NCBI GenBank assembly: GCA_003427395.1
Contig: BFEA01000012.1
Span: 1,996,089-2,046,830, forward strand
Reading direction: 5' to 3'
DNA: 50,742 bases
Source: Chara braunii
Lineage: Eukaryota > Plantae > Charophyceae
The position numbers and the translations under genes are program-made. The notes under the pieces are model-generated. The model was not told the DNA's origin. It did not search any database and was given only the letters and a program-made list of their open reading frames with translations. Of this stretch, positions 2,933 through 34,575 are shown one piece after another. The first letter of the stretch is position 1, and every line of letters begins with the position of its first letter.

Positions 2933-2941
2933 GCAGGATAT
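2933..2941 (-). other. U12-type (minor spliceosome) AT-AC 5' splice site
   Basis: The minus strand reads TTCG|ATATCCTGC against the U12 donor consensus RTATCCTT. The reading frame stops three codons later. Confidence 0.75.
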
Positions 2942-3059
2942 CGAACACTTCAAACGCGTCGAACCGATCAATAGAATCTTCATCAGAAGCTTCTGGTCTT
3001 GCTTGGCGAGATTTCCGTTCGTGAATCTTCGGATTCGGATTAATTAGCCCCGGCGTCAT
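2942..3059 (-). CDS. AE7: First coding exon of an AE7/CIA2-like (MIP18/FAM96, DUF59) cytosolic Fe-S assembly protein; remaining exons not found in the window
   Basis: The translation MTPGLINPNPKIHERKSRQARPEASDEDSIDRFDAFEVF(D) matches the recalled plant AE7 N-terminus (M..GLIN.NP.I...K.R........D......D..E.FD). It ends at a phase-1 ATATCCT donor. Confidence 0.85.
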
Positions 3060-3270
3060 TGTATGACTTGATGTCTCCGTCTCGAGAAAATCACCCCCCC
3101 TCCCACCCGCGAATCCGGCGACCACACCTCCGCCCCCGCCGCCCCCGCCGCCGAGAAGATCGCCCTCTACTCTCAAGCCCAATCCGCTGCCACCGATGAC
3201 ACCGCTGCTGCTAACGAAAGCGGCGGCCGCGGCAACGACAGCGGAGGACGCACCCTCAACTTCGTTCGCC
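3060..3270 (-). other. Probable 5' UTR part of the AE7 exon, preceded by a 3' splice acceptor
   Basis: The minus strand shows a T-rich tract, then TTGAC..TGTGCAG|GG at 3271/3270, implying an upstream UTR intron. Confidence 0.45.
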
Positions 3271-3918
3271 CTGCACATTTTTTGTCAATCAAAGCAACCA
3301 GATAAAAAGAAAAAAAACACCAATCAATGACTCTAGCACAAAGAAGTCCCCCGATCGACCAGGAAATTTAAAAAAAAAAAAAAAACCCACCAATTCGTGA
3401 CTCTAACACAAAGCAGTTCCCTGACAGCAGATAGTCCCACACAGAGACCACTACCGTCTTCAACCGAATACAACGTACGATCATTATTGCTGTATCTCGA
3501 CTGAAAGGTGGCCCAAATACAGCTACAATAACCGGGCGGGCGTTCTATGCGGGTGTAGACGGGTAGTTGGCGTATCAAGCTCAACCAGTCGCCCAGAAAG
3601 CAGTCAGGGCAGACTCACTCGAGAAGTTTCCTGGATGTATTTGACCGAAAGTTCAAGTTGACCTGGATGCATCGAGTCGCAAGAACGTCCAGGTTTCACT
3701 CCAAAAAGTCCCAGGTTGGATAAGCCCTCACTCGAACAAGGGGAGGAGTCGGTCACACAAGACACTACCGAAGAGAGCAGTCGATCACGCAGCTGTCGAA
3801 AACAGTCACACACGCAGCAGACGCGAATCAGACAGACAGAGTAGAAAAACCGCGAAACACAGGCAGCGGCGCAGACGTCTCACATCGCAGACAGACTCGT
3901 GCATTCTCACACTAGGAC

Positions 3919-3956
3919 CTGTCTCTTATACACATCTAGATGTGTATAAGAGACAG
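3919..3956. other. Nextera mate-pair junction adapter (assembly artefact)
   Basis: Exact CTGTCTCTTATACACATCT-AGATGTGTATAAGAGACAG (two back-to-back 19-bp mosaic ends), flanked by identical 154-bp copies at 3765-3918 and 3957-4110. Confidence 0.97.
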
Positions 3957-4264
3957 CTACCGAAGAGAGCAGTCGATCACGCAGCTGTCGAAAACAGTCA
4001 CACACGCAGCAGACGCGAATCAGACAGACAGAGTAGAAAAACCGCGAAACACAGGCAGCGGCGCAGACGTCTCACATCGCAGACAGACTCGTGCATTCTC
4101 ACACTAGGACTCTTTGGCCCGAACCTGGTCATATTTCTGGTCAGCTGCATCCAGGATAATCCTAGCTACTGAAAGGACATTCCACAAACATCCAAGAGAA
4201 AAGGCGGAGGAAGACGAGGAAGCGACTACTGTCGAGGAGACAAACCGCCGACCAGTCCTTATGC

Positions 4265-4304
4265 ACACACCAAGCCAAAATAGGGCCACACAAAACTCGC
4301 TCAG

Positions 4305-4401
<97 letters not shown>

Positions 4402-4434
4402 AAGCCAAAGTAGGGCCACACAAAACTCGCTCAG

Positions 4435-5575: not shown

Positions 5576-6806
5576 GAGGAAGAGAAACAAATTGAGAGAC
5601 TGAAGTGATAAACATGGGCAGGAGTGAACAAAGCAGGGAAAGAAAGAAAAAGAGAAAGAAAAAGAAATAAAATGATAAGAAAGGGAATCTCGACGCAGAT
5701 CCACCTCAAAGCACGGACCGATGAGGCTTACATGGTTAAAAATTTCGTTTCAGCGACACCAGTAAATCGTCAATCTCGATGGCGGACTGATCGATCATTC
5801 ATTCAGAAATACTCAGACGTGCAATCGCCGCTCCGATGCCTCGATAAGAGCCACCCACCACAATTTCCCAGGCGGCGGGGCACCTGGGCGAGCAGAGTCG
5901 AGGAAAAGAGAGAGGGAAAGGGAGTGAGAAGGGGAGGGAGTGAGGGAGTGAGGGAGCGAGGGGGGAAGAGAGAAAGTAGATCTGTGATTGGCGGGATGGT
6001 CCACTTGTAAACTGAACCCAGTGGTATGTAACGTGAGACCGATTCCCCCGACAGCAACAGACAACGTGAACGATGCAGGCGGGAACGTGGTCGGCCTTGA
6101 TTCAGCTTCAAAATTTTCTATTCTCTCCCGCCGCTATGCCAGGTTGGGCTTTGTTCTGCGACTCCTTCAGGTCGGCGGGAGAGAGGTTTCGTCCTGCTGC
6201 CCGCATACGAGGAGGCGCCGTTTTCCTTTTCCGTGTTTGGCCACGTGGAGTTCGCTCATGACTCCCGCCCCCGCCTTCCAAAACCGTTTCTGTGCCCGCC
6301 AACGCGCGACTGATACGAGCGGGTCAGAATCCTCCGTCCATGCGCTCCACTGACAAGCTATCACCCCTCCCAACCCCCATGAGAAAGCTACTACGCAATA
6401 GCCCACAGCGAAGATCAGCATGGGCCCTGCGGAAGAACGAGGACCATAGTAACTGGGAGGGGCAAGTTCCCCTTCTTTTTCTCTTTCCGTCTTCTCTGAA
6501 TACCCCTAAAGGTTGAGATATAAGCCAAAATGCCCCTAAAAGATCTGTTTTCGGTCGGGATAATTTGTGAATACCCCTATAAGTTAAGGTATTTCCCAAA
6601 CTGCCCCTAAAAGATCTACGTAGAGCAGAATAAATGTTTTGCGAAATGCCCCTGGGATCGATTGGACCTGTCATCTTTGCAAAATACCCCTACCGGGCAC
6701 TATCCACGTTTGCCAAATGTCCAGGTACTTGCAAGCTTTTCCCAGGCCCTATGTATTTTCGTTTTACCTCTAGTGGCCCAGGTATCTTTGCATTCTGCCC
6801 CCTTGC

Positions 6807-6875: not shown

Positions 6876-7392
6876 AGGGAAGCCGGATAGCAGGATTGTA
6901 ACGAGCGTGAGGCTGAGGGTGAGCCGAGGGAGAGGAGAGAGAGGGAGAGAGTGAGAGCACACACACACACTCACTCCCTCGACACGACGGACTCGGACTG
7001 AGGATCGGACGCAGACAAAGTGGCAAGGCACAAAGTCGAAGTCTTGGATTCCCGAATGCCGAAAACAGCAAGTCACACTGAGTACGAGTACAGCAGCAGA
7101 GAACTGGTACGAGACTCCCCCCCGTACCGTACGGGGAGCCGGTCATAAGTACCGGTGACACGTACGGTACCAGGGGCATTTCTGCAAAGGCCCCGAGGGC
7201 AGAACTGAAAAATGCAGTATTTGAAAGTGGCGCCCGAATTGCAGCATGGCGCCAGTTGTCCAAAATCCTACGGTACCAAAAGGAGGGGTTTGGAAAAAGG
7301 GTGCCAGGCCGAAAATGGGATGCAGCCGAAACAGCAAAAGATAGACCAGGGATCGAGCCCTGGCGAAGTCCGTAACAAGGATAGCGGGGCGG

Positions 7393-8318
7393 TGTCGGGG
7401 CAAACACCCTGACAAGGGTATTTGCCGAGGATTTCAAACGTCAGACATTGTCCGACTCTTTCGTTGAATTGAAGGACTCGATGAGACTTACATTTGTCAA
7501 ACGTTCATTCAGACTGACCTATAATCGAGAGACTGTAACTTTTAGAAACCTAATCCGGACACATGCAGCGCCCGAGAATGATAGCAGTAGTTGGCAGTTT
7601 TTAACGAGCCGCAGAAGGGCGTGGATGTGGAAACGCTAACGTTTAATCTATCCTACTTAAAACAACAGCAGCCGCACAATTCAGGGCCTAGACACTGCGA
7701 TACCAATAGCCACGTTATGCTTGCGGTCGCGGCGTGACGAAATAGAGGTCGTAAACGCCTAAAATTGTTTATCTCTTTAGATATGTGTGCGGGGCTTGGT
7801 TTTGTGCCGAGGGTCTGAAGCCCCGACATTGTGACCTACTAAGTTGGGTACTCGTCTGGTTGAAAGACGAGCAACTGGTCATGTGACAGGGGAAGATAGG
7901 CGGCGCCTACCATACCACCAAAGGGCGGCCCTCTGGGGCGCGGAGCTCTTCATAAGGAAGAGCACTCCTACTTCTTTCGAAGTAGGAGCTAGCCCTGTTG
8001 GTAACGTGTCAGCCTGATGTGTCATGGATTCATGGATCGAGACCAGCATACTGAAGGGCTAGTTCCTTTTGATGGAGCAGCCCATAGAAAGGAGAGTTCA
8101 GGCGCGACCGATTTCGGTCGTGAGATCGTTGAGATCGCGTGACCGAAATCAGCCGCACGAGATTGAGTATGATCCCTGCGCAAGGATGACACACATAAAT
8201 CTAGAAAAAATCCAATTTGTTTTTCGATCCCGACTGAGATTCGAACTTGGGTTTGTATTTCAACAGCTCGTGGATGTGCCACGAGCACGTGATATGACTG
8301 TTGGTTGTGGTCAAACAG

Positions 8319-8349
<31 letters not shown>

Positions 8350-8671
8350 CAGAAGTGACTTGTCACCTGGCGGGTAGAGAAGTGGTAGAGGGGCAGAGCC
8401 TCTGAAGATGTCTGTTTTAACAGGCAAACGTTTCATAGAAGAGGTAAGTTTTTTTTCTTTTATTTAAGTTTTTTTTCTTTTTTTCTTTTTTTTTTAAGAT
8501 TTCGGTGTAGATTCTTCTTTAGGTTTCTCTCCCTTCGTTTTAACGAACTGCGTGAGCGCCCGTTCGTTTTCATAAACAGGCTGCACAACTCACTAGCAGA
8601 CAGGGAATCTCGAACGAATCTGTCCCCAAAATAAAGACGTATACACTGCCACGCTTGTGTGCTTGTGTGTG

Positions 8672-8758
<87 letters not shown>

Positions 8759-8759
8759 N

Positions 8760-8846
<87 letters not shown>

Positions 8847-11800
8847 AAGTAGGTCTCCAATCTGACGGTGGTCTCAGGTTACTTCCATCGAGATGATGAG
8901 CAAAATCGAATGACTCTTCCACTAGAACATGAAAATATGCACTCCCACGCATTTGCCTCACCCTGTGTTCTACGAGTGTGCCCGTTCGTTTCGATGAACA
9001 GGCTGCAGGCAACCTTAGGCGAGTTTGTTTTTTTTTTTTTTTTTTCGTTTTTCATAATTCTTGTTAGATTATTTTTAAACTTTTTATTATTATTATTATT
9101 TTTTCTCTCCTGCGGGATACCCCCCCTCCTATTTGTTGGAGTGCAGTTGTTGCACCCGTTCATTTTAGAAACGGGTTGCAACACTCAACGGCGTGCTTGA
9201 CCTGGCGCAGGTTGCGTTCGGGTACTGGCGCACGAGGTAAGGGGACTAAGCCCCTGTTGAGTTTGACTCTAGTTCGTCTCTGTGAAATGATTGAGCCTGG
9301 AGGGTCGGCCATTCATTTGAATGGCGGGTTGAAGAGGAAGGTTAGGAAAAAAATAGGAGAAAGAAAAAGAAAAGAAAAGAAGAAAGGGAGAAAAAAAAAA
9401 AAAAGTAACCGCCGCGAATATGGTCGAGGTCACGAAACAGGTGCAGCCCCAGAAGGTTCTAGGGGTTGATGAAACTGCGCCTCTTCGTTTTGAGAAGGCA
9501 ACAGTAAAGTGACTGAGTACAACCATTTCCAGGAGCACCTGACCTGGGAAAATGGCCAGGTACTTCTAGGGGTTGATGACTTTGGTTCCCCTAGGGGAAA
9601 ACCAAGGCACTAAGCTCCTGGCTGTTGATTTAGATCAAGGGCCAGAAGCACTTACAAATTTTTCCTGGATGTGGGCAAAGCAGTTGCCACATGCCTTTGG
9701 CTGGCTATAAAAGCCTGCTCCCCACCCAACAGCCTCATACTTGTGGCAATGTTGCTGGGGCATTCTACTTGAGTAGACGCTGGCTGGCTGGCTGCTGGTG
9801 TCGTGAGGGAGTGCTAGCGAAGTGTTGGAGGCCTGCAGGAACACTTGGAAGTGAGGAGCGAGGCAGCCATAACCGATGTTGAGGGCATTCTGCCTCAGTG
9901 TGAGGCTGGTGCTGCACCTGTGGGATTACCCCTGGGACCTTCGTGGAACTAAGGCTTTGTACTAGACTGGTTGTAGCGGTGCGGTAGGCTGAACTTCCCT
10001 TTGAGTAGGGTTATGCTGCAGAAGTGCGGACGCGTCGGCGCTGTATTTTTTTGTGTGAGGTTGGGGAAATGTTGTCCGTTTAACAACAACAAATTGTTTT
10101 ATTTTGTGGGGCGGCATACTGCTGGATTGTTGGCGCGGTGACAACAATCAATTTTGTGGGGGAAATGCTGTCAGTTTTACTACACGATGTCAATATTTTC
10201 TTTGTGTAGAGAAGTGTTGTCTGGTTGACGACTTGTCAAGCGACACTATGTTCGAGGGGCAGTGCTGCCTAAATTTTGCATTGCAGTGGAGCCGTTTTTT
10301 TTGTGTGTGATTACACGGTGGTGCCGCACGGCGACGTGGTTCCTTATTTGACGACGCAGCGAGCGATGGTCGCGTCATTGTTTTTTTGGTGTGTGGCAGC
10401 TATGGCGGACCAGCATGATATAGAGGTTGGACTGACGCTGGTGCGTGGTTGGGATTGTGCGGCAGTGGTGCATGGACCGGTGGCATGAAGAGAGTGCGGA
10501 ATGAGTGCACGTGGCAGTAATTATTGGGTTCGTGACATAAGCGGTCTTAAGTCAGGGCCACCTTTATTTTTTTTACGACGTGCAGTGTGAGCAGTTTTGA
10601 GTTTTGGACCATCTGGTATTGCGGGCGATGGTATGTGACCGTCCGGAACCGTCTAGGACCATTTTTGGAACCAGGTGGGTCTGGGTTTCAGATCGGGGCC
10701 GACGCGTTAGCTTGATTATTGTGAGCAGGCATGGTGATTGGAGGCGGCGTGGACTTGCGATTGGTTTGGTTGGGGAGTATCCTTGATGGTTAAAATACAG
10801 TTTGGATTATGTTGGGACAGCTCGAGACGTTGGGGCCGGTCTAAGCAAGGGTCAGTTTTGGACATTATGACCACGTGAAAACTCATTTGTGGGAACACCC
10901 AGGATTATCTCGCTTAAGTTTTTTTGTGGTCCAGCCTCTGCTTATTCGGGTACTTGGAGAAAGAGGCAGATCATGATATATTGGGACGATCACAACTTGT
11001 GTAGTTGTGACCCGCATATTGTCAACTTCAAAGATGATTTTTTTTTTTTTGATTGAAATACTACTCGACTTTCTTGAGTGAGCCGATTCAAACATCACTC
11101 AAGGTCAGTTACTTGATTGAGTCAGACTTCCCTTCACACCTGTGTGAACCTACACTTTGCTTGACTCTGCTGTTTTGAACGTTTGAAAGAAAAGGTAGAG
11201 GAAAGTTGAGCGAGTCATGCATGTGAATGGAAAAATATGACTTGTGTATGCGAATGCATTGGTTTCCTTTGAATTTGATTGTTTTGCTTTGCGTAGGTAG
11301 GTAGAATGATGTTTACAAAGGAGATCGATTGTGCTTATTTGAGATGAAGAAAATGATTATCCTTCTTCTACCTTTTGCCTGCCTGCTTGTTAAAAGGACT
11401 TGTTGTTCTGAGAAAGGTTAATTCATTGCATGTCGTAAAATGAATTTGATTCAAATAAAGCAGATAAGGTCAAATGGACTTCACCTTTTCTCGAGGTCTA
11501 CCTATTCTATCCCGAATGACCTTATCTATCCGTACCTGTTCAAATGATTACCATTCTCCATCTCCTTCTGTTAATTTTCGTCCAAGCTACCCCGAACTTA
11601 TTAGAAATGAGAATATCTGAAAGCTATTTGCAGTGGACACATCCTCTATCTTCAGGAAGCATCTGGGGCGGGGCTTCGTTGTTTTAGGAGCCGACCCTAT
11701 TATTGACTCGGAGTGGACCGTTCTACGGGGGGTACTTGCCGATTCGATGGAGACGATCCGACTTCTGAGATCCGAGTTTTGTGCTCGGGCGAGGAGGAGG

Positions 11801-12770
11801 AGTACCCCATACCACTTCTTAGAGGATGAGATATACAACACTTCAAGCAATACACCTGATCAATAATCATCTGAAAAACATCCTGTCATCCACGAAGATT
11901 GAGAAAGTATGAAGACAGGTGTGAGCGTGTATAATCTTAGGTTGGCGGTAGGCTGAAATTAATGACTTTTGCAGCGCGTCTCATCAAGTCAGAACTGAGG
12001 TTGTCCGACTAACATGTTGGCAGCATCAATATTATTTTCAATAACCAACTCCTTGTTGGGGGTTGTTTCATTGTTTTGTGGTGTTCGACCTGAGGCGGTC
12101 GGATTGTTTTTTAATCTTGTGTTATTGGATGTATGAGATGATGATTTGAATTCTTTCGATTATCATTGCAGATTGGATGTGCGTTCTATCGACTACGGTC
12201 GAATCCTTTTGATGTAATTATGTATGGTTGATATAATTTTCTTAGGACTATGTATCTGAGGAACTAGGATTGAGTGATGGGTTTCACGCTTGGTTGAAAC
12301 CGTCCTAGTCGACCGACGTCCGCTGCGTACTTAGGAGATCAACGCCATAAGGAACGGACGACGCTCGGGTCCGCTTGGCGTTAACCAAGCGTATCTATAC
12401 TATAGCGAACAAGCAAACGCCCTCGACTGACCTACCTCTGCAATTGCATCTAAAAACTTGCGCATGTGGGTCAGTAGCTCGGTAGGGATACGCCCCTAAG
12501 GGTGGTGACAGCCCCTTAGGGAAGGAAAGCTTATGCTCGATAGAAACCTATTCTGTCATAGGGGACTGCGGGATGTATAACTGGCGCACCCGGTTAGAGT
12601 GATGTAGGAACGACGCGACCACACCCATCTTGGCGGCTCGCGGGGTTATGGGTCGTCACAAGTTGTCGCTGTTTTTTTTTTTACTCCTGCGTAACATGGC
12701 CAGGAGGGCTCCCGCACCTTGCAAAAGAGGCGGGAGCCGATGCGCTCGACAGCGGGATAGTGGGATAGCG
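7393..12770 (+). mobile_element. Non-coding ~5.4 kb interspersed element, copy 1 (possibly a very long solo LTR or LARD-like element)
   Basis: It has colinear inverted homology blocks with 33680-34575 and 20880-24590, for example 12300-12590 vs 21010-21300, 11670-11830 vs 22190-22355, 11070-11170 vs 22800-22895 and 9582-9645 vs 23685-23750. It starts TGTCGGG in both copies and has a conserved TATAAAA at 9706. No ORF was recognised. Confidence 0.75.
8675..8845. repeat. (GA)n microsatellite
   Basis: Seen directly in the sequence. Confidence 0.95.
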
Positions 12771-17199: not shown

Positions 17200-20100
17200 A
17201 CTGTTTGATTTGATGCATGAGTTGAACCTTGTTGATCCCTATTGCGCGCTTAACCCGGAGGAAGCCGGGTAAACTTGGTATTCGAACATTAGGAAAGACA
17301 AAGGGGAAGTAACACGAAGAAGATTATACTACTACTTGGTTAGTAGCAACTTGTAGCAGGCGTTTACACATATCAGACAAGTCTCTCACTCAATGTCAGA
17401 TCATAAACCGGTACAAGCAGACTTTGTCATTGCGCAATCATAAGGAAGGGGAAAATGATACTTTAAGTTGAATATCAGAAACTTAGAAGATCTAGGGTTG
17501 GGTTAAGGAGTAAGGTAACTTACTATATGGAGGCTTGACACTCCGCAAGGGGCAACTTTGATACTATAGCAGATTGGCTAAACGAGGGTAAATCCATTAT
17601 TTCTAAAGTTCTGAATGTCTGCTCTAGAATTATGGTTAGGGAGAGAAATCGAGAGGAGGACCAATGTCGTAGGAGGGTGGAGGAAGCGGAAAGGAGGATG
17701 GAGCAACATCTATATCAGAATTAGTGTGGGTGAAAGAAAGAGAGCAAAAATTGGCAAACTGGGAAAAACTGCAAGATGAAAAACAATGGAGGTGGGAAGA
17801 AAACTTGAAGGTGAAAGAGATACTTCTGCAAGATAAGTTAACAATGGAAACTCTTAAGAGGTTACTGCCGAGTTACTCCTTTCATCAGTTGGTGCAACTG
17901 AATCACCCTTTTGACGCCTTTGGCCCCCCGGCTAATACTCCAAACGAGTTTTTGGATTACGATAAGCTTTTACTCTCACATCTTGACGACTATGCGACGT
18001 AGAGAAGACGAAGAGGCAGACCTATCTACAGAATTAGACATGTGGGAGGAGACTGAGGCCACCCTGACCACGTCATAGTGCTTAAAAACCATTTCGTAAA
18101 AACGAACATATTATATTTTTTGAACGAAATTAAAATTAAGTTTTTGGGTGAAATCTGGTCCAAAGTTTTGGCTCCTTGGGGTCCGGCGTTGACCCCTTAG
18201 ATGTATCTGGTCGCAGCTTGAGACTAGATACATCTAGGGGGTCTGGCGTTCTAGGAACGCCGGACCCCCAAGAGCCAAAGATTTGGACTGGATTTCGTCC
18301 CAAAAACTTAATTTTAATTTCATTCAAAAAATATAAAATATTCGTTTTGACGAAATGGCTATTGCTCGAACCTCGACAGACTGATTACTCTAGAGGAGTT
18401 GCAATATACGCTGACTGAAATGGCAACAGGTAAATGTCCAGGTAGGGACGGCCTAACGGTGGAGTTCTATCGAAGTTGTTGGGAGTCAATGGGCCGGATA
18501 TTGGTGGAGGTTTACAACAAGGTGCTGAAAGGGGAAAAGTTCGGGGATCTGATGATATTTGTTGTGATCTCAGTGATGTTTAAGATGAGGGACAAGACCT
18601 GCATAAGGAATTACCGACCTATTTCCGTATTGAACGTTAATTATAAGTTGTTGGCGACGACATTGGCGCTGCAATTGGGGAAGATGTTACCCAGACTGGT
18701 AGAGCAAGATCAAAGGGTCTTCGGACAGGGTAGATCTATCTTTGTAAATATCCTCATGACAATAGAGAGCATTGAGGTCATAAGAGATAAAAAATTGGAT
18801 GTGGTCATTCTCCTCTTGGACATGGAAAAGGTGTACGATAGGGTGTGTTGGCCATTCGTTATGACCACCTTGAGGAAGATGGGCTTTGGGCAGAGATTTT
18901 GCAGTTGGGTAGTAGCGATGTACATAATAGCGAGGTCTGCAGTCTAAGTCAATGGCCACTTGTTCAACTCCTTCCAACCGAAACGCTCACTCAGGCAAGG
19001 CTGTCCCTTAGCCCCTCTCCTATTTGTGCTGCAGTTGGGGATTCCATTTGAATCGGATTCGGAAACACCTCCATATTCGAGGTCTGCAACTCTCCTCCAA
19101 CAAAGAATGTAGGACGAACGCATTAGCAGATGATCTGTTCCTAGTGTCATAAAACTCTCTGGAGTCTTTAGGGGCGGTGAAGGAAGCTTTGATGAAACAT
19201 TCACAGTTGTCGGAGGCACTGGTAAACTGGAACAAGTCCGTCTACCTCCTCCCGATGAAATTTATCTTGAAGGTGGAATAGGGGATGCAGCGAGTGGACC
19301 CCGAGTTGGGAGAACAGTTCCTGGGGGTGCTAGTCAGTTACTAATATAATGGGGATGGCCCAGGGAATGATCCTGCAACAAAGGGTGGTGGCAAAACTCC
19401 AGATGTGGGGTACAACTTGACACCTTTCCCTGTTTGGTCAGGCTATGGTTATCAACGTAGCATTGTTATCGCTGATCTGGTTGATGGGATCGGTGAGAGA
19501 GATAGCTGCGTGCACCTTTCCAAAGATTATAAAACTGGCGATGAGATTCCTGTGGAAGCCACAGGCAAGCGGAGAGGAGGGTTTTATGAGTAAAGTGGCA
19601 TGAGAGTTAACTACCTTCCCGAGGGAGCAGGGAGGGCTGGGCCTGATCGATCCTCAACGAAAAAATCAGGCCCAACTGAGGAAATGGCTGACGAAGGTCG
19701 CCCTGACCGAAGTGAAGAAAAAATTGATATTGTTGGTTGAACGAACCCTAAACCTTAAGAGGCAGTGACAGTTAAGCAGAGGAGAGGACGTTTGAATCTG
19801 TTTTTTCATCGACTCCTTTATGCCAAGAAAACTCTACTCGGAATTCTGGGAAGCGGTGCGACGACCTGGATTAAGCAACCTCCGGATATCAGAGTTGGCC
19901 AACCTCTAAAGAAGAAGTTTTGACCCTGACATTGTTTGAGAACCCTTTTATCCAAAACAATGAAGGGTGAAATTTCTCTGCAGGTTCGAAATCAGCGGTG
20001 TTCGGTCGGTCCTGAATCACTGGCAAGAGGGGATTGATAAGGATAAATGATCCGTTGTCAGAGCTCTAGGGGACATGGAAACCACTTCAGGAAGTTCAGG

Positions 20101-20685: not shown

Positions 20686-23149
20686 TTTATAAATATGAAA
20701 GACTTTCTTTTTATGAAATGTCTTTGCAACTTTCATTTCTCGTGAGAATTTTTATGTTGTTCAACCAAGAGACGGTGTGGCAACTGCAAGGCCTGATTGA
20801 TAGTGGTTTCAGAAAGGTCCAGGAGTGACGCGTAGTGGATCACTCTGGTAACCTCTAACTGGTGGGAGATTGAGTAATCTCGCAATGACGGTGTCGAGTG
20901 CATCGTCCCCCGCGTGAGTGAGGGTCCTCCCGACCGCGTCACGCAGGAGAAACTTAGGAGACAACTCGGGGACGACACGGTAACCCACGTCGACCCTTCG
21001 CCGCTCCGGCCGAGTGCGCCAGCTGTACATCCCGCGGTCCCCTACGACAGGATAGGTTCTCGCGGGGCACAACTAACCTTCCCTAAGGGGCTGTCACCAC
21101 CCTTAGGGGCGTATCCCCGTCGAGCTACCGATCCACATGCGAAGGTTTTTATAATGCAATTGCAGAGGTAGGCCGACCGAGGGCGTTTGTTTGTTCGCAG
21201 TAGCATAGGTACGCATGGTTAAACGCCAGAGTGGATCCGAACGTCAGCCGTCCCTGAGGCGCTGATCTCCCAGGAATCAAACCGACGTCGGTCGACTAGG
21301 ACATAATATTCCAGGCGTAAGGAAAACTTCTAGTGATCGTAGTCCCTTCTTTCAAAGGCAATCAAAAAGTTAAACAGACAAAACACTTTCATGAGACGAT
21401 TCATGTCAACATAAATTGACTTATCTTCTGAAATCGATACAATCATACATGCTACAAAGGTTGACTTGACCTCAAACAACACTTATCGACAAAAGATCAA
21501 GGCATGACCTACACACAAGGCAATGCTCAAATGGCGTCTGACTAAAGTATCTTCACTCTGCCTGCCAGACGGTTGGCTGCCACAACTTTCTCGACTTGAT
21601 GAGACGCGTTGCCAAGTTCTGTCATTCCATACCACAGTGACTGCTAGCGAAGAAATGCCGACATCCCAATTCTCAAGTAAAGTTAGGTTGTCATTGGCTT
21701 TAATGATGATCACGCTTTTTCTCTATCTTTGATGTGAATGTCATTTGCAAGTGGTACGACTACCACTATACGAGTTAGTACTCGACTTGAACGACCGAAC
21801 ACTGAATGCCCCATTAAGGTCAAGGGTCCACCTTCAAATTTTGTTGGTCACTTTATCCTCCTGGGCAATAATTACTCTTTCTGTTCCACAAATGATCATG
21901 AGGTACGCGCCTTTGACATGAAGACATTCAATGCAATGCTCTAGCTACCTCTTCCTGTTCAACTAGCCTGATTGCCCCAGGCTTGCACTTCCTATGATGC
22001 AAACCTATCCTAGAAGGTAGTGCCTACACACACTCCGTCCATAACTAGTGAAAACACGAACTGGGCTTCTTGTGGCACCAGTCCCCCATCCGTTTGTGGC
22101 TCCTAAGACGGCCACTAGAAGGGTAAACTATAGCAGTTCTTCTTAACGTGAGCCGCTAAGAATTTAACGCCTTTCGTGAATAACACACGTCCATCCCCTA
22201 GGAGGTGGTCTGGGATACCCCTCGTCCTCGCCCGAACGAACCTCGGATCTTAGAAGTCGGGCTGACTCTACCACGACAGCATGGTACCCCCCCGCCTAAG
22301 CGGTCCACTCCGAGACGTTAACAGGGTCGGCCCCTAAGGCAACAAACCCCCGCCTTAGATGCCTCCTAGGGAAAGGGAATGCACTTACCACAGCAGACGG
22401 TCAACCCTTATCACCTGACGTTAAGGGCGAACCTAGACGAAGAAGGAGATCACAAAGAAGAAAAACATTCAGACAGACGGGCATAGATAGAGAGGGTCAT
22501 TCGGGAAAGAATGGGCAACCTCAGGGAAAGTCTATGTCCAATTGATTCCTTCTCCTTTGTGCATCACTTCGTTTCCCGTCGTCTTCTTTTCCCTTTAGTT
22601 CATACGCACATACAAGCACATAGATGAGAAAGCAACCATTCTTCCACCATTATCACCCTCATCCATCTCAGTCCACATGTCGTACCTGCAATCAAGTCAA
22701 GCCACACACAGACCACCATACAATCCTTTACCATCGTTAGCCTCCCCGTCACACATGCAAACACACATTTCTTTCTCCTTTTTAATGAATGTTCAGAAGA
22801 CCAGGGTCAAGCAAGTGTGGTTCATACAGCTGTGAAGGGAACTGAGTGAGGTTAACTGACCTTGAGTGAAATTGAGGAGACGGCCCACTCAAGAAGACCA
22901 TGTAAAATCGCACTCCAGAGAAGATCGCTGCAATAAGTTGTCAGAAAAGTGATCCACACCACTCCCTTACGACGACCACCTTCCATAACATAATCACTTC
23001 CCAATAGTCTGATGACGTTTCGGCGTCGTCGTCACACCATCCGCACCACCACGCCGTTGCTATCAATACTCGAGTGTGCTGTCACAAAATGTCCCTCAAA
23101 GTCAAGTCAAAACGGGCAACACCCCCTTGTCACCACTTAGAACGCACTG

Positions 23150-23320
23150 CTGTCGCCGCAAAAGTTCAGCAGCACCTCCGCGTCACCGCCAAAAAAAACA
23201 CCTGCCGCCGCACAATTTTGGCAGCGCTTCCGCATCACCACCAAAAAAACACAGCTGCCGCCACAAAATTTCGGCAGTGCTTCCGCGTCACCACCAAAAA
23301 AACAGTTGCTGCCGTGCCAA
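23150..23320. repeat. ~52-bp tandem repeat, 3 copies
   Basis: GCCGC.CAAAATTT.GGCAG.GCTTCCGC.TCACC.CCAAAAAAAC is repeated. Confidence 0.8.
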
Positions 23321-24196
23321 GCGGACAATACCTCCCCTACACACTTCTCAAAGTGCAGTGACAGCTATGACTGCCCTCACTCTCACGCTCCCTGCAGACC
23401 TCCAGCGCTCCTCTCTCTCTCCACCCCGCTGAGATGGCAACTATGGCTGTGTTCCACAGCTATGGCCACCTCCAGCAGTCCTCCCCTCTCTCTCTTGCAG
23501 ACCTCCACTCAACTCCTTCTCACTCCACCAGCAGCTCCTCCTCCAGTAGCCAGCATTCACCCAAGCGTAATGCCAGCAACACCAACCACAAATGAATGCT
23601 GGCTGGCTGGCTGCTGGCTGTTTTATAGCTGGCTGAAGGCCGAGGGCAGCTACTCTGCCCTCCAACCAAAACTCGGAGTCAGGCCTGGCCCTTGATCTCA
23701 AACGAGATCAAGGGCCGAGGAACTTGATATTCCCCTAGGGGAACCAAGTTCTAGGCCTTAGCAATGCATCCGGCCGCTACCCCCGGCCAGACGCAACTCT
23801 TAATGGCTGTATAGAGCCAAGTAGAGCAGACTGTTGAAGTTTAACAGTCTGCAGTCACCTCAGGGCCCAAAAGCTTCTACCCTCTGCATCTGACCTAAAC
23901 TCGAGGCCACGTACGTGGCTGTTACTCACCCTTTCTTTTCTTCCTCTTCCCTATTTTTTTTTATTTTTTTTTCTTTACTTTGTTCCCCCCCCCCTCTCAT
24001 TTTCTTGGCAAGGGCAACTTCGCCGTTCGAAACAAACGACCTCCCCTTTTACTTCTCAGGGGTACACTGGAAACAAGCCCAGTAAGGGCTTTTACCCTTC
24101 TTCACCGCGCGCCCGTACCTGGGCGCCATCAGTGCCAGGTTTGGGCACTCACTTGCAGCCTGTTCAACAAACGAACAGTCGCAGGTGAGTATTCGA

Positions 24197-24199
<3 letters not shown>

Positions 24200-24241
<42 letters not shown>
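24200..24241. repeat. (TC)n microsatellite
   Basis: Seen directly in the sequence. Confidence 0.95.
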
Positions 24242-24243
<2 letters not shown>

Positions 24244-24293
24244 GGTTGCGCAACGTATACATCCACCTTCGAGGGTGGATGCATTTGTTCCCT

Positions 24294-24354
24294 GCCAGAC
24301 TGTCGAGGTTCAGCCTCCTGATGAGTCGGTGAGAGTCCGACGAAACAGTCTGGC
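24294..24354 (+). ncRNA. Type III hammerhead ribozyme, intact
   Basis: The motif is GCCAGACUGU-C | GAGG UUCAG CCUC | CUGAUGA | GUCGG UGAGAGU CCGAC | GAA ACAGUCUGGC. It has a 10-bp stem III, a GUC cleavage triplet (cut after 24304), a 4-bp stem I, a 5-bp stem II and all core nucleotides. Confidence 0.95.
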
Positions 24355-24949
24355 CCAGTCTTCCGCCCCGTCAATAGTAGCAGCCCGTTCGTCAAAACGA
24401 ACGGGCGCTCGAGTGATATCACAAACAAAAAAAAAAAAAACAAATCTAAAGAATCTAAAAGGAAAAAATAAAACTAAAGAAAATCTCAAATAAATCTTAA
24501 AGAAGAAAAACCTAAAGAAAATATAAAAGAAGAAAAAAAGCAAAAAAAAGAAAAAAAAAACCCTTACCTCATCGTTGAAACGGTTTCCCGTTTTTTTTTT
24601 TTTTTTTTTTTTTTTGAACTTGTCGAAATATGTTCCAAAGTGAGAGTTTGAGGCCGGGGACCTCACAAATCAACCCGGAGTTATCCCGGCAGCATCAGCC
24701 GGTTTGGCTTACAGTGGCCAGACTAAACAACTAACCTATATTAAAAGCACAACCAAGATGATGATGACCGATGATATCTGGCTGTGTAAAGCACTAACCT
24801 GGTAGAAAATCACTCCTCATTGTTCTTTAGATTATCTCAACCTGTTCAAGTTGTCCACTAGTATTATACTACCATAGGGCCACTGCCCCTATACTTAACT
24901 AGACTAGCCTAGCCTCTAAGCCCACATAGGCAGCTGACTAATCTGCTCT

Positions 24950-27900
24950 GACTTGCTGCTTGAAGATGATGTTGTTTCTGTCCTCCCAGATGATGACGGA
25001 GCGGATAGCTTGTGCCACATATCCCCTCCCTTTCCGCTTGAACCATGTGGGAGGGATAATGCCATGCATTGCCCACGCTTCATCCCAGGCTAATAGGGTT
25101 CCCACAAACTGGTGTCAGTGCCTCTCCCACCACTGCCAAACTCTCCTGGAGGCTGGGCATTCCCAGAAGAGATGGACCAAGGTTTCCTCTTGGGTACCAG
25201 TGCCCTCATCAGAAAGATAAAGACATGGATCCGAACCCTGATCAGAGTTGACTGGATCCGCAAAGCAGCCAGGGGACGCAATCCCAGAGGTCGGCACTGG
25301 TTTTTGGTTACTTGGGCCCGCGATAACCAGCTGGCAGCTATTACCTTGACAGGGAAGATGGTTATCACCCCCTGGCTCGGCCTCTAAGCCTCTGCCGATC
25401 TCTGCTATGCCCGTGGGAGAGACTAGTTACTAGCTGCAGTTGCGTGAACCAGGGCACTCAGTTCAAGTAGACAGCCGCAGTAGGCTATTTGGGACAGGGG
25501 GAGTAGGAGAGTGTCCATGATTTAGATACGAAGTATGTGATGACTCATCGCCTACACTTCGTTTCCAGCTCCATACCTCTTTCGAACAGCCATTCAGCAC
25601 ATGGGATGGCGGAGTGTGAGAGAATCCAAAGGACCCCTACCAACTTCCGTGATGGTAGCTCTGGTAGCTGGATCCACAGGTTCTGCAAGGCCTGACCAGT
25701 CATAGGTTGACAGTTTGGAGTACGTCTGCTGAGCGTGGCAGCAGCAATTGAGGGGACTTCGTTGGGTTTATGAAGGAGCCTTCTGCCCATGGCTGAAGTG
25801 TATTGGTTGAGAAATTTCTGCTCCCCAGTATGCGTTCTCCACGACTAGGCCAGAGGATTCTCTAGTGGCTGGCCATTTACAAGGAGGTCACAAACAATCA
25901 TTCCCTGCTTTGTGTAGCGGTGCACTCAGATCTGTTTAAGCTTCTGTTGACAATCCAGAGTGACGTCTCCCTGTAGCAAGAGATTGGGAGAGGGGGTTGG
26001 CGCTGATTGTGGGGCCCATGCTTGGGCTAGCCATGTGTCGTCATCCAAGTCCTGAGTTATATAGTAGACCGTTGTCGGGTCAGCAGCCTGCTCGTTACAG
26101 TACCATTTCCCCACTGTCGGTTTGGAGACCTGCAGCTCGTGCACCCACTCCGATGGTATAGCGGCTCTGATTTGCTGACTCCTTGTACAAACATGTTGTA
26201 GTCTGCCCAATTTGTTTCTGAGTTGTTGCTCTCTGAGCCAATTCTTGTCTTCCTCACTCCAAAGGTCCGAAAGTCTCGTTACTGCCCGCTCTACCCATCT
26301 GCGCCCAAAGTTGCCCCCTGCTGCCGTGGTTGTGAACGGCCAACCTTGTGAGTCGCAGATTAGGGGGTTATCGAAGATGCCTTGCCTCATGATTTTCTCT
26401 TTGGTGATCGGTGCTGATTGTTCTTGCGGGAGCAGAGCTCGCCATGCTGACCAGCACGCGCGGACAACCGGTGACCGGGGCTGGCGGCGGATAAATGAAG
26501 TCATGAAGAGGCAGGTCTAGATGTCTTCTCTTCTGTTGAGCGAAAATTCCTACTGTAGCAAATCTTCCAAAACCTTGAGCCAGCCCCTGCGTTCCGCTTG
26601 AGTGGCAGCTCTCGATAACCATTTGGCAAGCAGGGCTAGATTTTGCCGACCGGGGTCAATGATGGCTAGGCCGCCCTGCTGATTCTTTTTTGTCACCTTT
26701 GACCAGGCACACTTTGTAATGTGGCCCTGCCCTTCGATTGCTGCAGGCTTCCACAGGTAACGAGCTGCGACGTAGGCTAGCTTTGATTAGGAGAGTGCGA
26801 CCCATCAAGGATGTGCCTACCGTTGTGCGGCAGCGACGTAGGCTAGCTTGGATCTTAGCCTGAAGGATTGTCTGTTGGGTCTCACTAGCGTTAGACCTGT
26901 ACGCCCAGGTAGCGCTCCGAGATATCCAAGGGGATACGTTTCATTCCCCAGTCTTGGTCTGCCAAGCTGTATTCGGCAGGGAGGAAGTAAACTGATTTGC
27001 TCCAGTTCACCTGTGCTTCAGATATTGTGCAATATGCATCGATCAGCGTCTTAGCTTCGTCCATAGAGTCTGGTGTTGCTTCCATTACCAGCAGCAGATC
27101 GTCCGCTATGGCTTCTGTCAGCAGCGTGTCTGAATCACCCAAGGTCAGACCCTTGATGCGCGGGGAGGCTCGAAAGGCGTTTAGGAAGATCTCCATCTGC
27201 ACAGCGAACAGCAAAGAGGCCAACGGGCAGCCCTGACGCAGTGAACGCGTTAATGAAAACGTTGGAGATAGAAAGTCATTGACATTGACGGATGTTGTTG
27301 CATCGCTGTAGAATTCCTTAACCAAGGTGCAGAAATGCGGACCAAAGCCAGGTGCTCCAACGTGGCCAGCACAAACGACCAGTTAACGCGGTCGTAGGCC
27401 TTCTCCAGATCGAGCATTGCAGCCATGACTTATCTTTTCTCCCGCTGTATCACCTCTTGTGCTCCCACTGCCATCAAGATGTTCTCGGCAATCGATCTCC
27501 CTTGAATGAAAGCACCCTGGTCCGGACCAGGGTGGGGAGAAAGGGGGTCAATCTTCTGGCCAAAAGTTTGGCCAGAATTTTGTATGAGACGTTGAGTCTC
27601 GAGATTGGCCTCCAGTTTCGTACGTTAGACTTATCTCCCTTTTTGTAGATGAGAGTGATAATACCGAGCTTCATGTCTTCCATAAGTGTGACGCCTTCTG
27701 GGACTTCGTTATATAGGTTCAGGAGGTCTGGCTCAATGTGTTTCCATGCCTCTTCGTAAAATTCTACAGGCAATCCACCCGAGCCCGGGCTTTTACCCCG
27801 CGCCATGGACTTAACCGCCTGCAGAATCTCTTCCGTTGTGATAGGCTGCTCAAGGGTGGTCACGGCTTCTTGGTTGAGGCGGGCGTGTGTATGCTGCCAC

Positions 27901-29240
27901 AGGTCTTGCTCTTCACGCAGTTGCTGTAGCGAGATGTCGGGCTGACGTCGGGAGGTTAAAATGTCGCTGAAGTAGGCCAATGCGTATTCTCCAATTGCTG
28001 CCGAGTCAGTTGCTGGTGGTGCCTCGACATGGAACAGATGTTGGAGTTCCCTCATCAACGAGTGCTGTCTCGGGGGGCAAAGACGTTGGAAGGTGTCCTT
28101 CGTAAGACGGTCCGTAGTCAGAATGCCTTTCTCCTGGGCTCTCTTGGCCCAGATTATTTGCTGTTCGACCTGAAGCTCTTCCAGCTTGTGCAGCCATCTG
28201 TCTCGTCTGTGCTGCCAATAGAGCTCGGCCAGCGGACTGTTAGCTAGCTCCTCCTCTGCCTCCTCAACCATTTTCCTGCATTCTTCCTCTTGGTGTCTTC
28301 TACCCCTTGCCTGGATTCTGGAAAAGACATCCAGGGCACGAGTAACCACTTGCAATCCTGTATGCAACCACCCCCCTTTAGTGCCAAACTGGTGCTTGGT
28401 CTGTTGCCAATCCTGCCAATGATTTGCAATCCATTCTGTGACTCCCGGCCTGTTTAACAGGTCAGTGTTCAGACGGAAGGTACCCGGGCCTCTTACCAGT
28501 TGGCCCGCCATGGTGAAGCAGGCTACTAGTGGTCTGTGGTCTAATAGGAACTCGATTGGGCAGGTCACCGCGGTCAAGGAGTCCCAAGGGGAGCCCCTGG
28601 CCAACAACAGATCCAACCTCCTTTTCGGTGGAATGCCGTCACCCGAAGTCTGCGACGAGAACCAGGTATAGCCTAGCACCATCGGGTGAGTTGTACGATA
28701 TGTGTCTGTCAGATCCCGATCAGCTAGAAAGGCTGCAAGCATTAGGGCGTCGGCCTTAGGAGGTGTAAAGGTGGGTGAGTTGAGGCCAGGGACCAGAGTT
28801 ACGTTAAAGTCGCCCGCAAGGATGAGGTTGTCCTCCCTTGGAACGATGGCTGGTAGTTCTTCAAGAAAGGAGCGTCTCTCTGTTCTCTCCGTTGGCGCAT
28901 AAACAGTCATGAGGGTCCAGGTCTCGGATCCTAGTCGCATCCGCGCCCATATCCATCTCCCCCAGATGTCCAAGTCGTGGTCCAAAATCTCTGCTTCCAG
29001 GTTCCGGTGTATGAGAACTGCGCAGCCGCCCCTTGTATCGTCAGCAGGTGCCCAAAATTGGGGCCCCCTCCACCAACCTTCGATATGTCGAATCTTCTCC
29101 TCGTTTAGCTTAGTCTCCTCCAAAAAAAAAACTTGAATCTTCAGGTCATGCATCCAGGTCTTTAATCTGGGTCGTTTTTGCTTGTCCGTCGTATCGCCTT
29201 GCCCCCGGATGTTCCTGGTGGCAACTTTAAAGTCCGACAT
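24950..29240 (-). pseudogene. LINE ORF2 (APE endonuclease + reverse transcriptase + zinc-binding C-terminus), frameshifted
   Basis: 27474-29240 contains RNIRG, LEETK, VYAP, LAGDFN, DHRP, GKSPG..G and NWRPIS. 26891-27325 contains SLRQGCPL, IADD and RYLG. 25115-25297 contains EETLVHLFWECP. Confidence 0.93.
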
Positions 29241-32001
29241 GGATTGCTGCAGGGGCGGCTTGGGATTGGATCCACTGTTCTTCTTCTGAAGGCTGCTGCC
29301 TTGTCGGCCATGGATCTTCTGGAATTTTCAGAGTCCGCAGAGTTGCCCCAAGGTGCTGTGAGGAGCGTTCGGAAGGCTGCCGAGTGAGGTTGCTTGTCAA
29401 CTGCCAGTGTGGTACAGAAATCAGCCACTAATCTTGCGTTTACGTCCTCTGTAAGAAAGGTGTCATGGAGTTCCTCGATTGCATTAGATGCCAGCCAGCT
29501 CGATGGGAGTCAGACGACGCCTTGAGTGGCCAGAAGTGCTGTTGTTTCCAACGAAATCTTCACGTCCAAGGCTGCAATGGAGAAGTGTCAGCTGCCCCCT
29601 GCAGCCGCTGCTGTTGTCTTTCTCCCGATGCGGATGCCCGGGACCAGCCTGAACAGGAAGCGTTCAACGATGAAGGTGGAAGCTACCGCCTTGATTGCCT
29701 CTTTGGTCGTTGGCGATTGGCTCACAGCGACTGTCGGTATGGCCAGGACTCCCTTCTCCGTACGCCTCGCCATGAATTTCGTCCCCTGTGGCGAGAGCAT
29801 GAAGCAGAGCAACACAAGTTGATGTCTGATCAGGCTTGGCTGCGATCTGCTGCTTGATGGCTGCGCCGCCAGGGGAAGGGGCGCCAGCGGTCCCCTGGGA
29901 AGTGTGTTTGCAGGTGGAGGGGTTGAGGTTGGTATTGTAATAAACTCCAACTCTTCCTCTTCCTCCTCCTGCGTAGCCTGTCCATCACCTTCGGTGTTGA
30001 TCCTCCGTTGCTTGACTTGAGTCCGGAGAGATTGCCTTGGGTTCCTCATCGCTGTGTCTTCACTGATATGTCCGAAGAGGCTTGTGTCTTCTTGCTGTGC
30101 CGAAGGGGCGCCAGCGGTCCCCTGGGAAGTGTGTTTGCAGGTGGAGGGGTTGAGGTTGGTATTGTAATAAACTCCAGGTCTTCCTCTTCCTCCTCCTGCG
30201 TAGCCTGTCCATCACCTTCGGTGTTGATCCTCCGTTGCTTGACTGGAGTCCGGAGAGATTGCCTTGGGTTCCTCATCGCTGTGTCTTCACTGATATGTCC
30301 GAACTGGCCTGTGTCTTCTTGCTGTGCCGGTTGAAGCCCTAGGGCTGCCTGAACTGCGTCCGTGTTGGTGTGGTCTGAGTGGGAAGGGTATGACTCGTAT
30401 GGGTGCAGGTAAGTGGGGTTATCATAGAGGGTGACGTTGTGGTGGATGGGGGCTGAGGGGGAGTTTGCTGTGGAGCGTGGCACTACTGTCTGTTGGGGCG
30501 CACAGGTCCCAAGGGGGGGCACAGGTGCAGTTGATTGGTGAATAGTCGGAACAGGACCAGAGTGCGAAGTGTACAGTGGGATGATGGGCTGGGACGTGGT
30601 TGTGTGCAGTGGTACTTCCAGTTGCAGTGGAGGAGGGCGGGGGGGGGGCGAGCTAGGGAAATCAGCGGAGGGGATCTGAGAAAGGTCGAGCCTTGGTTAA
30701 GAGGTTGTGGGTTATCTGACGGGGCTGATGTGAGAGGTAACATCGGTCGTGTTGGGAAGAAGCCACTCAAAAGAGTGCTGAAGGACGGTGCTGCTAGGGA
30801 GAGGCCTTGGGCGTGAGGGGGATGACAGGGAGCGAATGAGACAAATGTCTGCTGTGGTGCAGTCCATGGGTTCATTGGTCCGGAGTAGGTTGGTATAGAC
30901 AGGACCCGAGGGGGGGGGGGCGGGAGCTGGGGAAAGGGAGAGGGCCTGGGTTGCGCCGGGGGGGATGGCATGTGTATGGTGGGGCGGCCAGTCTCTGATC
31001 ATGAGAGGTCGATGCTGCTGTGGGGGATGGCTGGTGGGGACTGTTGCTGTAGTAGTGGTGGCCCGGCGGGCCTGTGGCGGAAAGCCTTGTCCCCCAGACT
31101 GTCTGCTTCCCCGACCTCTACCACGTGTTCGCCGCCCTGGAGGCACGGGTTCAGCGAAGCGTGGACAGTCGGGGTCAAACTCATCATGGTACCACCAAAG
31201 ACACTTCTGACAAAAGGGACTGTTTTGATTAGCAAACTGGATTTTCATGATTTGGCCTGTCGGCCTTCTCAAGGCAATCCATTCCATGAAAGTGTCGGCT
31301 ACTACTGGGTCACAGTCCTTAACATTACCTAGCCTTGGCTCGTCCTCTCGTCTGTCCGGGGGGTGCATGTGTATGATTGGTCCCATCAATATTTGGACAA
31401 CATTTCGAAGGGAGAACATGGCCCCCAGAGGGACACGAAGAGCTATGATCCTGAATCTGGCTGCAGATTCGGCGTCCCGCAATTGGTCTAGTTCGTGCTG
31501 TGTCATCCATGGCCGGAATGTGACCCTGACTGGACCATCGCATGACGGGATCGCATCTTCTCTTTTGTTGATCATCATTTGGGCGATTTGTCGTGTGCGT
31601 GCAACGTAAGACATCACGTTAGGGCCCTCTCCATGAGTGCGGCCCCTCTTCTGCGATGGATTGACTCTAGGGTCGTGAAACCACGCATCCTTGTATATCC
31701 GTATGAACTGCTCGCGTTGGGCTATGGAAAAATTGGCTGCTCGCGAGTCGAAGATTACGATTACAGTGCGCTCCTTTAACCAGGCCACAGTCGCGTCGTC
31801 AACCTCTGAGCTTAGGTTGAGGTACCCTATTCCGTCAACAATTTCGACCTCTCCGTGATTAAAAGGTGTATCGGGGAATAGTCCGTCGTCGAAGCAACCG
31901 TCCAGGAGTGCCTGTATTCGTGAGTGATCCTCTACAGAAGTCTGGGAGGGGCCTGGTTGATGTTGACCCGGGTGTGTGGCCGCTGAAGGAGAGGGTTCCA
32001 T
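29240..32001 (-). pseudogene. LINE ORF1 (gag-like, zinc knuckle, Pro-rich), frameshifted
   Basis: The 429-aa ORF at 30712-32001 contains CQKCLWWYHDEFDPDC and is followed by broken Pro-rich ORFs that run up to the ORF2 start. Confidence 0.75.
29875..30328. repeat. 227-bp near-identical tandem duplication inside LINE ORF1
   Basis: 29875-30101 and 30102-30328 differ by only a few substitutions. Confidence 0.95.
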
Positions 32002-33679: not shown

Positions 33680-34575
33680 GAGGAACCCTCGTTCTTTTCC
33701 CTTTTTTTCTTTTTTTTTTTTTCAGAAAAAAAGTTACAATAAAGAAAAATTTGAATCATTTCTCGATTTATGCGTGTCATCCTTACACAGGGGTCATGCT
33801 ACCTCGCGTGACCGATCGCAGCCGTGCGATCCTGATGATCGCGCGGCCGAAATCGGCCGTGCCCGACTGGGCTGCTCCCAAAAGGAGATTCGCCAAGTAG
33901 GCCGGCATATGGGGTTCGATCCCGGTATCAGCCAGGTGAGGGTCCTATGCAATAACCTACTAGGCTAGCTCCTATCACGATATTGATAGGAACAACTCTT
34001 CTATATGAAGAGCTCTCCCAGTCAATTTTTTCCCCATGCCACGGCCTTGCAGGCTCGGCCTGCCTCAGGCCCAGCCTACCTGCGGCCCTGCAGGCCTCGC
34101 CAGCTTGTGGCCCTACATGCTTGGCTGACCGCGTGGCCTCGACATCGGCCTATCAACCCCCTAGCTCGGTGTCAACCCCCGCGGCCCGGGAAATAAGACC
34201 CTTCTTCCTATTCCCTCTGCGTCGTCCGGCACACTCCTCTTTTTAGCGTACCTAGGCCCTGAATCGCGCGGCTTAGCAGTCGTGCGACATTATTTTAGAT
34301 AGACTAGGTCTGGCTCTAATCTTTCCATGACCGCACACCACTGCGGCCTCGTCGAGAACCGCGGACGACAGTGCCAACTCCTGCTGTCCCGAACGAACGT
34401 CGATGACATCACACATCAGCGACGTCAACTTTAGGTTTCTCAGTTATAGGGTTGGTCTGAATAACTTTGGCAACGTCAATCTCATCATGTTTCTTAAATC
34501 CAGCGAAAAGAGTCGAACAGCGTCTAACCTTGAAAAACTCGGGCAGAAACCCTCACAGGGGTTTCTATCCCGACA
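33680..34575 (-). mobile_element. Non-coding element copy 2, 5' portion
   Basis: Inverted homology to 7393-8350, including conserved hairpins and the TGTCGGG terminus. Confidence 0.75.

Follow-up and report, generated by a model that had tools for sequence, protein, structure and literature searches.

A sequence-intact type III hammerhead ribozyme in Chara braunii, likely a silent copy of an abundant module derived from Penelope-like elements

What is a hammerhead ribozyme motif doing in an ORF-less stretch of the Chara braunii genome, and which kind of element brought it there? The question is raised by positions 24294-24354 of a 50,742-nucleotide stretch of contig BFEA01000012.1 (assembly GCA_003427395.1), hereafter called the window. 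An earlier note on this DNA had read the motif as an intact type III hammerhead with a predicted kissing loop, carried by a multi-kb, non-coding, non-autonomous retroelement. We compared the region 23990-24425, at 80% likeness, with the reads of three stranded oligo-dT RNA runs and one DNA run labelled Chara braunii, and extended the searches to three loci of the same assembly (L001-L003) that surround homologues of a neighbouring LINE ORF.

In fact, the motif at 24294-24354 (+) is a genuine, sequence-intact type III hammerhead. When the window was searched against all of Rfam, 24297-24351 (+) matched RF00008 (Hammerhead_3) with 53.3 bits and an E-value of 4.7e-9; the match covers model positions 1-54 of 54 and exceeds the gathering score of 48.5, and this full-length hit is the outcome of the Rfam check that the earlier note had proposed. 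Helix III (24294-24303/24345-24354) has 10 bp and an open end. The cleavage triplet GUC, read from the sequence like the other core elements, ends with C17 at 24304; it is followed by helix I (24305-24309/24313-24317; 5 bp including a U.G pair, loop UCA), the CUGAUGA core (24318-24324), helix II (24325-24329/24337-24341, loop UGAGAGU) and GAAA (24342-24345), all on the plus strand. The conserved catalytic core (C3-A9, G12-A14, A15.1-U16.1, H17) is thus fully present, and core, topology and a UGAAA-like loop 2 are those of RF00008 members. In the minimum free energy structure, alone and in context, three helices surround the core, I and II capped by loops and III open. The segment 24290-24358 folds as the hammerhead three-way junction at -29.1 kcal/mol (z -3.3), which none of 200 shuffles equalled, and the fold is kept in a 183-nt context (24243-24425, z -5.0) between two hairpins at 24260-24281 and 24383-24406. 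Sequence reading, model match and fold therefore agree with the note on the core nucleotides, the three stems and the open stem III. Its statement that there is one active motif holds as well: the Hammerhead_3 search of the window gave no further match even at E<=5, and a descriptor scan of ~120 kb of Chara DNA (the window and L001-L003) gave no other intact one. The copy is probably cleavage-competent. A plus-strand transcript would cut itself between C24304 and G24305, and the predicted cut would leave a 2',3'-cyclic phosphate and a 5'-OH.

Do the two closed loops touch? Loop 1 UUCA (24309-24312) is complementary to UGAG in loop 2 (24330-24333) with one U.G pair, and in the family consensus, where loop 2 reads UGAAACU, the complementarity of UUCA and UGAA becomes perfect. 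By simple arithmetic, ~3% of random pairs of a 5-nt and a 7-nt loop would contain a perfect 4-nt match. In ~30% of the family U24309 is locked in a U-A pair, which leaves a loop of 3 nt. A metagenome scan for CTGATGAGTCGGTGARANTCCGACGAAAC returned six contigs (L004-L009) with unrelated hammerheads of other topology or context, which have in common with Chara only helix II and loop 2; their loop 1 is not complementary, even though helix II and loop 2 are identical. This shows that helix II and its loop recur as a module, and it makes the case for a kissing loop weaker. Three of these contigs carry complete hammerheads just upstream of ORFs, at 8195-8223 (-) in L007, 3461-3489 (+) in L009 and 2529-2557 (-) in L006, again of other topology or context and with the helix II and loop 2 of the Chara family (GUCGGUGAAACUCCGAC or ..GAGAG..). 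Natural type III hammerheads make a few loop-loop contacts, most of them non-canonical. The kissing loop of the earlier note thus stands as complementarity, which is conserved and even perfect in the family consensus; as a tertiary contact the UUCA/UGAA pairing is possible but unproven, because in the reads neither loop varies across the family at the 5% level, which leaves no covariation.

The reads tell how common the motif is. DNA word depth is 12.4 on 23990-24064, which assembles into one perfect contig and is therefore single copy at >=80% likeness. From there it rises to 38-110 on the upstream hairpin (24260-24281, against 12 on the single-copy flank) and to ~1400-1500, ~120 times single-copy, on the downstream hairpin (24383-24406). 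On 24320-24334 it reaches ~1.1 million, a summed depth rather than a copy number, ~10^5 times that of the single-copy flank. We place the number of hammerhead modules in the Chara braunii genome on the order of 10^4-10^5. Some DNA contigs carry two hammerheads head to tail, and the loose ends of reads reveal copies that are cut off within the hammerhead and abut (TA)n and (CA)n.

The family is also expressed. Each RNA run holds 2005-4430 reads on 24305-24349, in both mate orientations. At 24347, A>G occurs in 73/413 reads of one orientation and in 3/344 of the other; such orientation-dependent frequencies indicate that the libraries keep the strand and that different copies are transcribed each way. 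Nearly all core reads (all but one in two runs) continue into flanks unlike those of 24294-24354, and the locus-specific flanks have 0-2 reads in the three RNA runs. The copy at 24294-24354 is thus silent in these libraries.

Family variants within 24307-24346 respect the ribozyme. In helix I, 24313 G>A turns the U.G pair into U-A; in helix II, 24327 C>T retains a G.U pair; and 24322 T>C falls on U7, the sole core position known to accept any base. Among the variants listed for this interval, none lies on an essential core position. Loop 2 differs by 24333 G>A (99%) and 24335 G>C (~80%), so that the copy at 24294-24354 bears two private loop changes. C17, a CpG site, is T in ~14% of the DNA depth; U17 is compatible with the NUH rule. 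No pile-up of RNA ends was seen at 24304/24305, a weak test given that family reads clip at 24307, the libraries are oligo-dT and the locus is without reads. The ratio of depth upstream to depth downstream of the cleavage site is 0.06-0.09 in RNA and 0.05 in DNA, and is uninformative on cleavage in vivo. In loose ends with the main-family flank that run upstream past the cleavage site (24304-24307), the majority triplet is GTT, with T at C17, in each of the three RNA runs and GTC, with C there, in the DNA contigs; at an agreement of 0.5-0.6 this is only a hint. Self-cleavage may have removed GUC copies from uncleaved poly(A)+ RNA, or the expressed copies may be those with CpG decay.

What do the other copies look like? 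The dominant family is flanked by ..GGGGATTCTGCAGACTGTYGAGG upstream and GAAACAGTTTGTCACAGCCCCTCGTTTGTTGTCCTCTT downstream, and these are the flanks of a decayed hammerhead in the window itself, at 511-578 (-), 24 kb away from 24294-24354 and on the other strand. There G12 has become C, helix II has an insertion and the cleavage triplet is broken, and Rfam returns no match for it at E<=5. It sits in a main-family unit of ~220 nt (431-650, -) that is inserted in (TA)n, present on both sides, and whose flanks equal the loose-end consensus of thousands of reads. Next to it are two further tail copies, one in tandem and 5'-truncated (430-348, -), the other inverted (292-343, +), which together make up a palindrome at 290-403; more tail fragments lie at 699-747 and 1913-1953. 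The palindrome resembles miRNA models of Rfam on both strands (mir-4433 with 61 bits against a gathering score of 77, mir-8 with ~40 bits). These scores are explained by the two inverted tails, and inverted tail stacks of this kind could yield hairpin RNAs. L003 carries another copy of the 24294-24354 subtype (88% over 43 nt); it is 5'-truncated and has (CA)n on both sides. A protein search with the translation of the open frame that runs through the hammerhead (24185-24493) found no candidate further copy. Family depth together with the copies at 431-650 and in L003 bears out the claim of a repeated retroelement family rather than a single copy. The 5' truncation, partial tandem and inverted copies are features of the family (292-650, L003 and contigs), not of 24294-24354. 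The same is true of insertion into microsatellites, (TA)n at 431-650 and (CA)n in L003; the copy at 24294-24354 has (TC)n on its 5' side only.

These hallmarks have been described before. From C. braunii, Craig et al. 2021 (PMC8557442) reported Chlamys Penelope-like elements (PLEs) of three types. One, Chlamys-2_cBra, combines a gag-like ORF with a canonical 3' hammerhead; the third, PLE-X-like type also has canonical hammerheads. Very high copy numbers are reported there together with frequent 5' truncation, partial tandem and inverted copies and microsatellite insertion, structural traits listed for Chlamys and Naiad PLEs alike. PLE hammerheads are mostly minimal type I in animals and canonical in plants (Cervera & de la Pena 2014, PMC4209133). 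The system is not an undescribed one: hammerhead-bearing Chlamys PLEs of Chara braunii are already in print (PMC8557442). By Pfam, neither the window nor L001-L003 contains a Penelope-type ORF (GIY-YIG endonuclease, CxC motif and PLE-type RT), only LINE APE/RT sequences and an integrase fragment, and the ORFs near the hammerhead have no Pfam match. With no PLE ORF present, 24294-24354 is at most a non-autonomous or truncated PLE derivative.

To explain these results we propose, as the likely reading, that 24294-24354 is a silent, diverged copy of a very abundant module that derives from the published hammerhead-bearing Chlamys PLEs. The link to PLEs is drawn from shared hallmarks and from the text of PMC8557442; against it, this copy abuts (TC)n on one side and has flanks unlike those of the main family. 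We envision that short, non-coding retroelements that target microsatellites spread the module to the 10^4-10^5 order in Chara braunii, and that the copy at 24294-24354 would be an old, diverged and transcriptionally silent one. The short units would most likely be 3' or pseudo-LTR parts, or non-autonomous derivatives, of hammerhead-bearing Chlamys-type PLEs, in which the ribozyme would cut transcripts that are tandem or read-through down to unit length. We infer the catalytic activity, the mobilisation by Penelope-like elements and this trimming alike.

A tentative variant of this proposal would make the short units (5' hairpin, type III hammerhead and 3'-hairpin tail; ~160-230 nt) a distinct SINE-like family that PLEs mobilise. 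If true, the green lineage would have a counterpart of the animal non-LTR retrozymes that depends on Chlamys PLEs for its mobility in trans and counts 10^4-10^5 copies, with both strands transcribed. Tandem units would then be cut to unit-length, possibly circular RNAs, and the UUCA/UGAA complementarity would be a tertiary contact.

Could the hammerhead belong instead to the larger repeat in which it lies? The surroundings are as the earlier note had them. A (TC)n microsatellite (24201-24241) lies 52 nt upstream, and directly before the hammerhead there is a strong hairpin, CATCCACC..GGTGGATG, at 24260-24281 (+), with 8-9 bp and loop UUCGAG. Its counterpart before the decayed copy, at 650-628 (-), has another stem and the same CCACCTTCG centre. 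Downstream, the 10-bp hairpin GCCCGTTCG..CGAACGGGC at 24383-24406 (+) recurs at 24157-24179, 9002-8978 and 8583-8555. In the general form CCCGTTCG-N6-CGAACGGG it is also found at 9176-9152, and the copies have compensating differences. An A-rich tract then follows with a block CTTACCTC..GAAACGGTTTCCCG (24420-24590, +). All of this closes an ORF-less host region A (21010-24590, +), whose reading frames carry no Pfam domain, and which is collinear over ~3.5 kb, in blocks of 61-82% identity, with a paralogous region B (8400-12593, -). Both regions have hairpin, microsatellite, second hairpin, A-rich tract and CTTACCTC..GAAACG block; in B the microsatellite is a longer (CT)n (8840-8674), and the A-rich tract and block stand at 8530-8400 (-). 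Because B shares it, 24420-24590 is part of the host region; the hammerhead unit does not have its poly(A) tail here. Within A, 23130-23314 (+) is a tandem duplication of ~105 nt with 78% identity and the motif CACCGCCAAAAAAAACACCTGCCGCCGCACAATTTTGGCAGC.

Region B has no hammerhead. The slot from (CT)n to hairpin (8673-8586) holds ~90 nt, and its alignment with the slot of A is no better than those of shuffles (z 1.6). By eye, a TTCCCTG|TCTG junction resembles an excision at the base of helix III, but in view of this slot alignment we do not claim a clean-deletion loss from B; either gain in A or loss in B may account for the difference. DNA contigs of other genomic copies combine A-type flanks with the hammerhead, and their word depth points to ~10-40 such copies. 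Some contigs span 24255-24351 or 24298-24410; those that run from the hammerhead to the downstream hairpin (24298-24406, 24303-24410) are ~10% different; and others join 24128 directly to 24296, or 24152 to 24300, and run on to 24406-24425. Given these joints, the module may also travel in a larger, low-copy composite repeat.

A stronger view counts the hammerhead as integral to, and functional in, a new retroelement, multi-kb and non-coding, that is neither retrozyme nor Penelope-like. The collinearity of 21010-24590 (+) with 12593-8400 (-) and the contigs that pair the hammerhead with A-type flanks speak for this, but we hold it improbable. B is without the ribozyme, A and B are only 61-82% alike, and at >=80% likeness 23990-24064 has one copy. 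Elsewhere this hammerhead, at ~10^5-fold depth, stands between flanks of quite another kind and in short units embedded in (TA)n or (CA)n; PLEs with hammerheads have been published for this species (PMC8557442). The multi-kb host is thus unsupported as the mobile unit: its flank is single copy, its paralogue has no ribozyme and the abundant members are short, with other flanks.

The host region adjoins a LINE. This element (24591-32001, -; APE endonuclease and RT, frameshifted; Pfam Exo_endo_phos and RVT_1) is separate from the hammerhead element. The T-run 24591-24615 represents its poly(A) tail and abuts the A-rich tract, and a possible ORF1 lies at 30712-32001. The database search with the 588-aa ORF of the LINE returned 21 homologues, every one a Chara braunii protein (35-76% identity). 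A degenerate LINE-type RT fragment lies at 18399-19150 (+); its RT part (18399-18947, +) and the RT fragment at 26891-29240 (-) are both LINE-type with APE endonuclease. No target-site duplication was found for the LINE that would show region A to continue beyond it. The A-rich end of B is likewise adjoined by a poly(A)-tailed retrocopy, in opposite orientation (8318-8345). That a retrocopy neighbours this end in both regions suggests that the tract is a hot spot for LINE endonuclease. The window contains three U6 retrocopies, at 8098-8345 (+), 33700-33866 (-) and 6403-6478 (+), each of which joins a structured 5' portion to the U6 3' half and ends in poly(A). They score 46.5, 37.4 and 22.4 bits with the Rfam U6 model, of which they cover the 3' half only, and look like a U6-half SINE-like family mobilised by LINEs. 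The block 33742-33866 matches 8224-8098 and may be an independent repeat. L001 has a full-length U2 snRNA gene at 6886-7080 (-), with 105.8 bits, ~3 kb from a Chara LINE.

Very unlikely, in our judgement, is a plant-type LTR retrozyme that Ty3/Gypsy elements mobilised and that survives as a solo LTR or other fragment. Type III topology and a stable helix III are indeed those of plant retrozymes (PMC4918200), and the integrase fragment shows that LTR elements exist in this genome. The plant layout, however, has two hammerheads in direct LTRs of 300-400 bp around a core of 300-600 bp; here there is one hammerhead match and, at E<=5, no second in the window. The tRNA-Met primer-binding site TGGTATCAGAGC with <=2 mismatches has 3 matches against 3.2 expected, chance level, and none within 750 nt of the hammerhead. 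Graded 5' truncation and microsatellite sites are a signature of non-LTR elements and PLEs, not of LTR integration with 4-bp duplications. On this point the note was right: this is not the compact retrozyme layout.

We give even less credit to domestication, by which the ribozyme would act in cis on a host transcript and process it. A fully intact core between diverged flanks would suit such a role, but the locus-specific flanks have 0-2 reads in three RNA runs, there is no gene or ORF around the hammerhead, and paralogue B has lost it or never had it. A chance consensus match, for which nothing speaks except the small size of the motif, is refuted by the E-value of 4.7e-9 for the window against all Rfam, the homologous copies in the window and in L003, and the massive DNA depth of the family.

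Thus the hammerhead at 24294-24354 is real but ordinary in the Chara braunii genome. The single locus carries little weight, being a silent relic of a family whose PLE link in Chara is already published. The family is another matter: a type III hammerhead competent as a monomer, at ~10^4-10^5 copies with both strands expressed, far exceeds the ~100 in land-plant genomes. Chara is a convenient system to ask what hammerheads do for Penelope-like elements, whose catalysis was dispensable for insertion in vitro in the PAc study (PMC11167929), and whether the plant lineage has circular RNAs of the non-LTR retrozyme type.

How does the family compare with known systems? Set beside the RF00008 hammerheads of viroids, satellites and plant genomes, the motif shows no difference; it is the genomic carrier that differs. 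Plant LTR retrozymes (PMC4918200) are likewise non-coding repeats of the green lineage with type III hammerheads and closed helices I and II. They have paired 300-400-bp LTRs, a primer-binding site and a second ribozyme, none of which was found at 24294-24354; the Chara copies, unlike them, are 5'-truncated and microsatellite-targeted, with a copy number orders of magnitude above the ~100 per genome of plant retrozymes (Cervera, Urbina & de la Pena 2016, PMC4918200). According to one proposal, animal non-LTR retrozymes derive from PLE pseudo-LTRs as non-autonomous elements (bioRxiv 10.64898/2026.07.22.740005; PMC4209133). With the Chara family they share short, non-coding hammerhead repeats, dispersed or in tandem, co-occurrence with PLEs, and expression. 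Their hammerheads are of type I, often minimal, with a helix III of 1-2 bp, so that dimers are needed; the one at 24294-24354, by contrast, is of type III with a 10-bp helix III and should act as a monomer. Head-to-tail tandem units of the animal kind (~170-400 nt, type I) are not present at 24294-24354, which has a single type III motif. The Chlamys PLEs of C. braunii differ from the copies here by the GIY-YIG/RT and gag-like ORFs, absent next to our short (~160-230 nt), non-coding units, which we liken to them by hallmarks and published description. Both live in the same organism, both have a canonical hammerhead near the 3' end, and both insert into microsatellites, (CA)n included.
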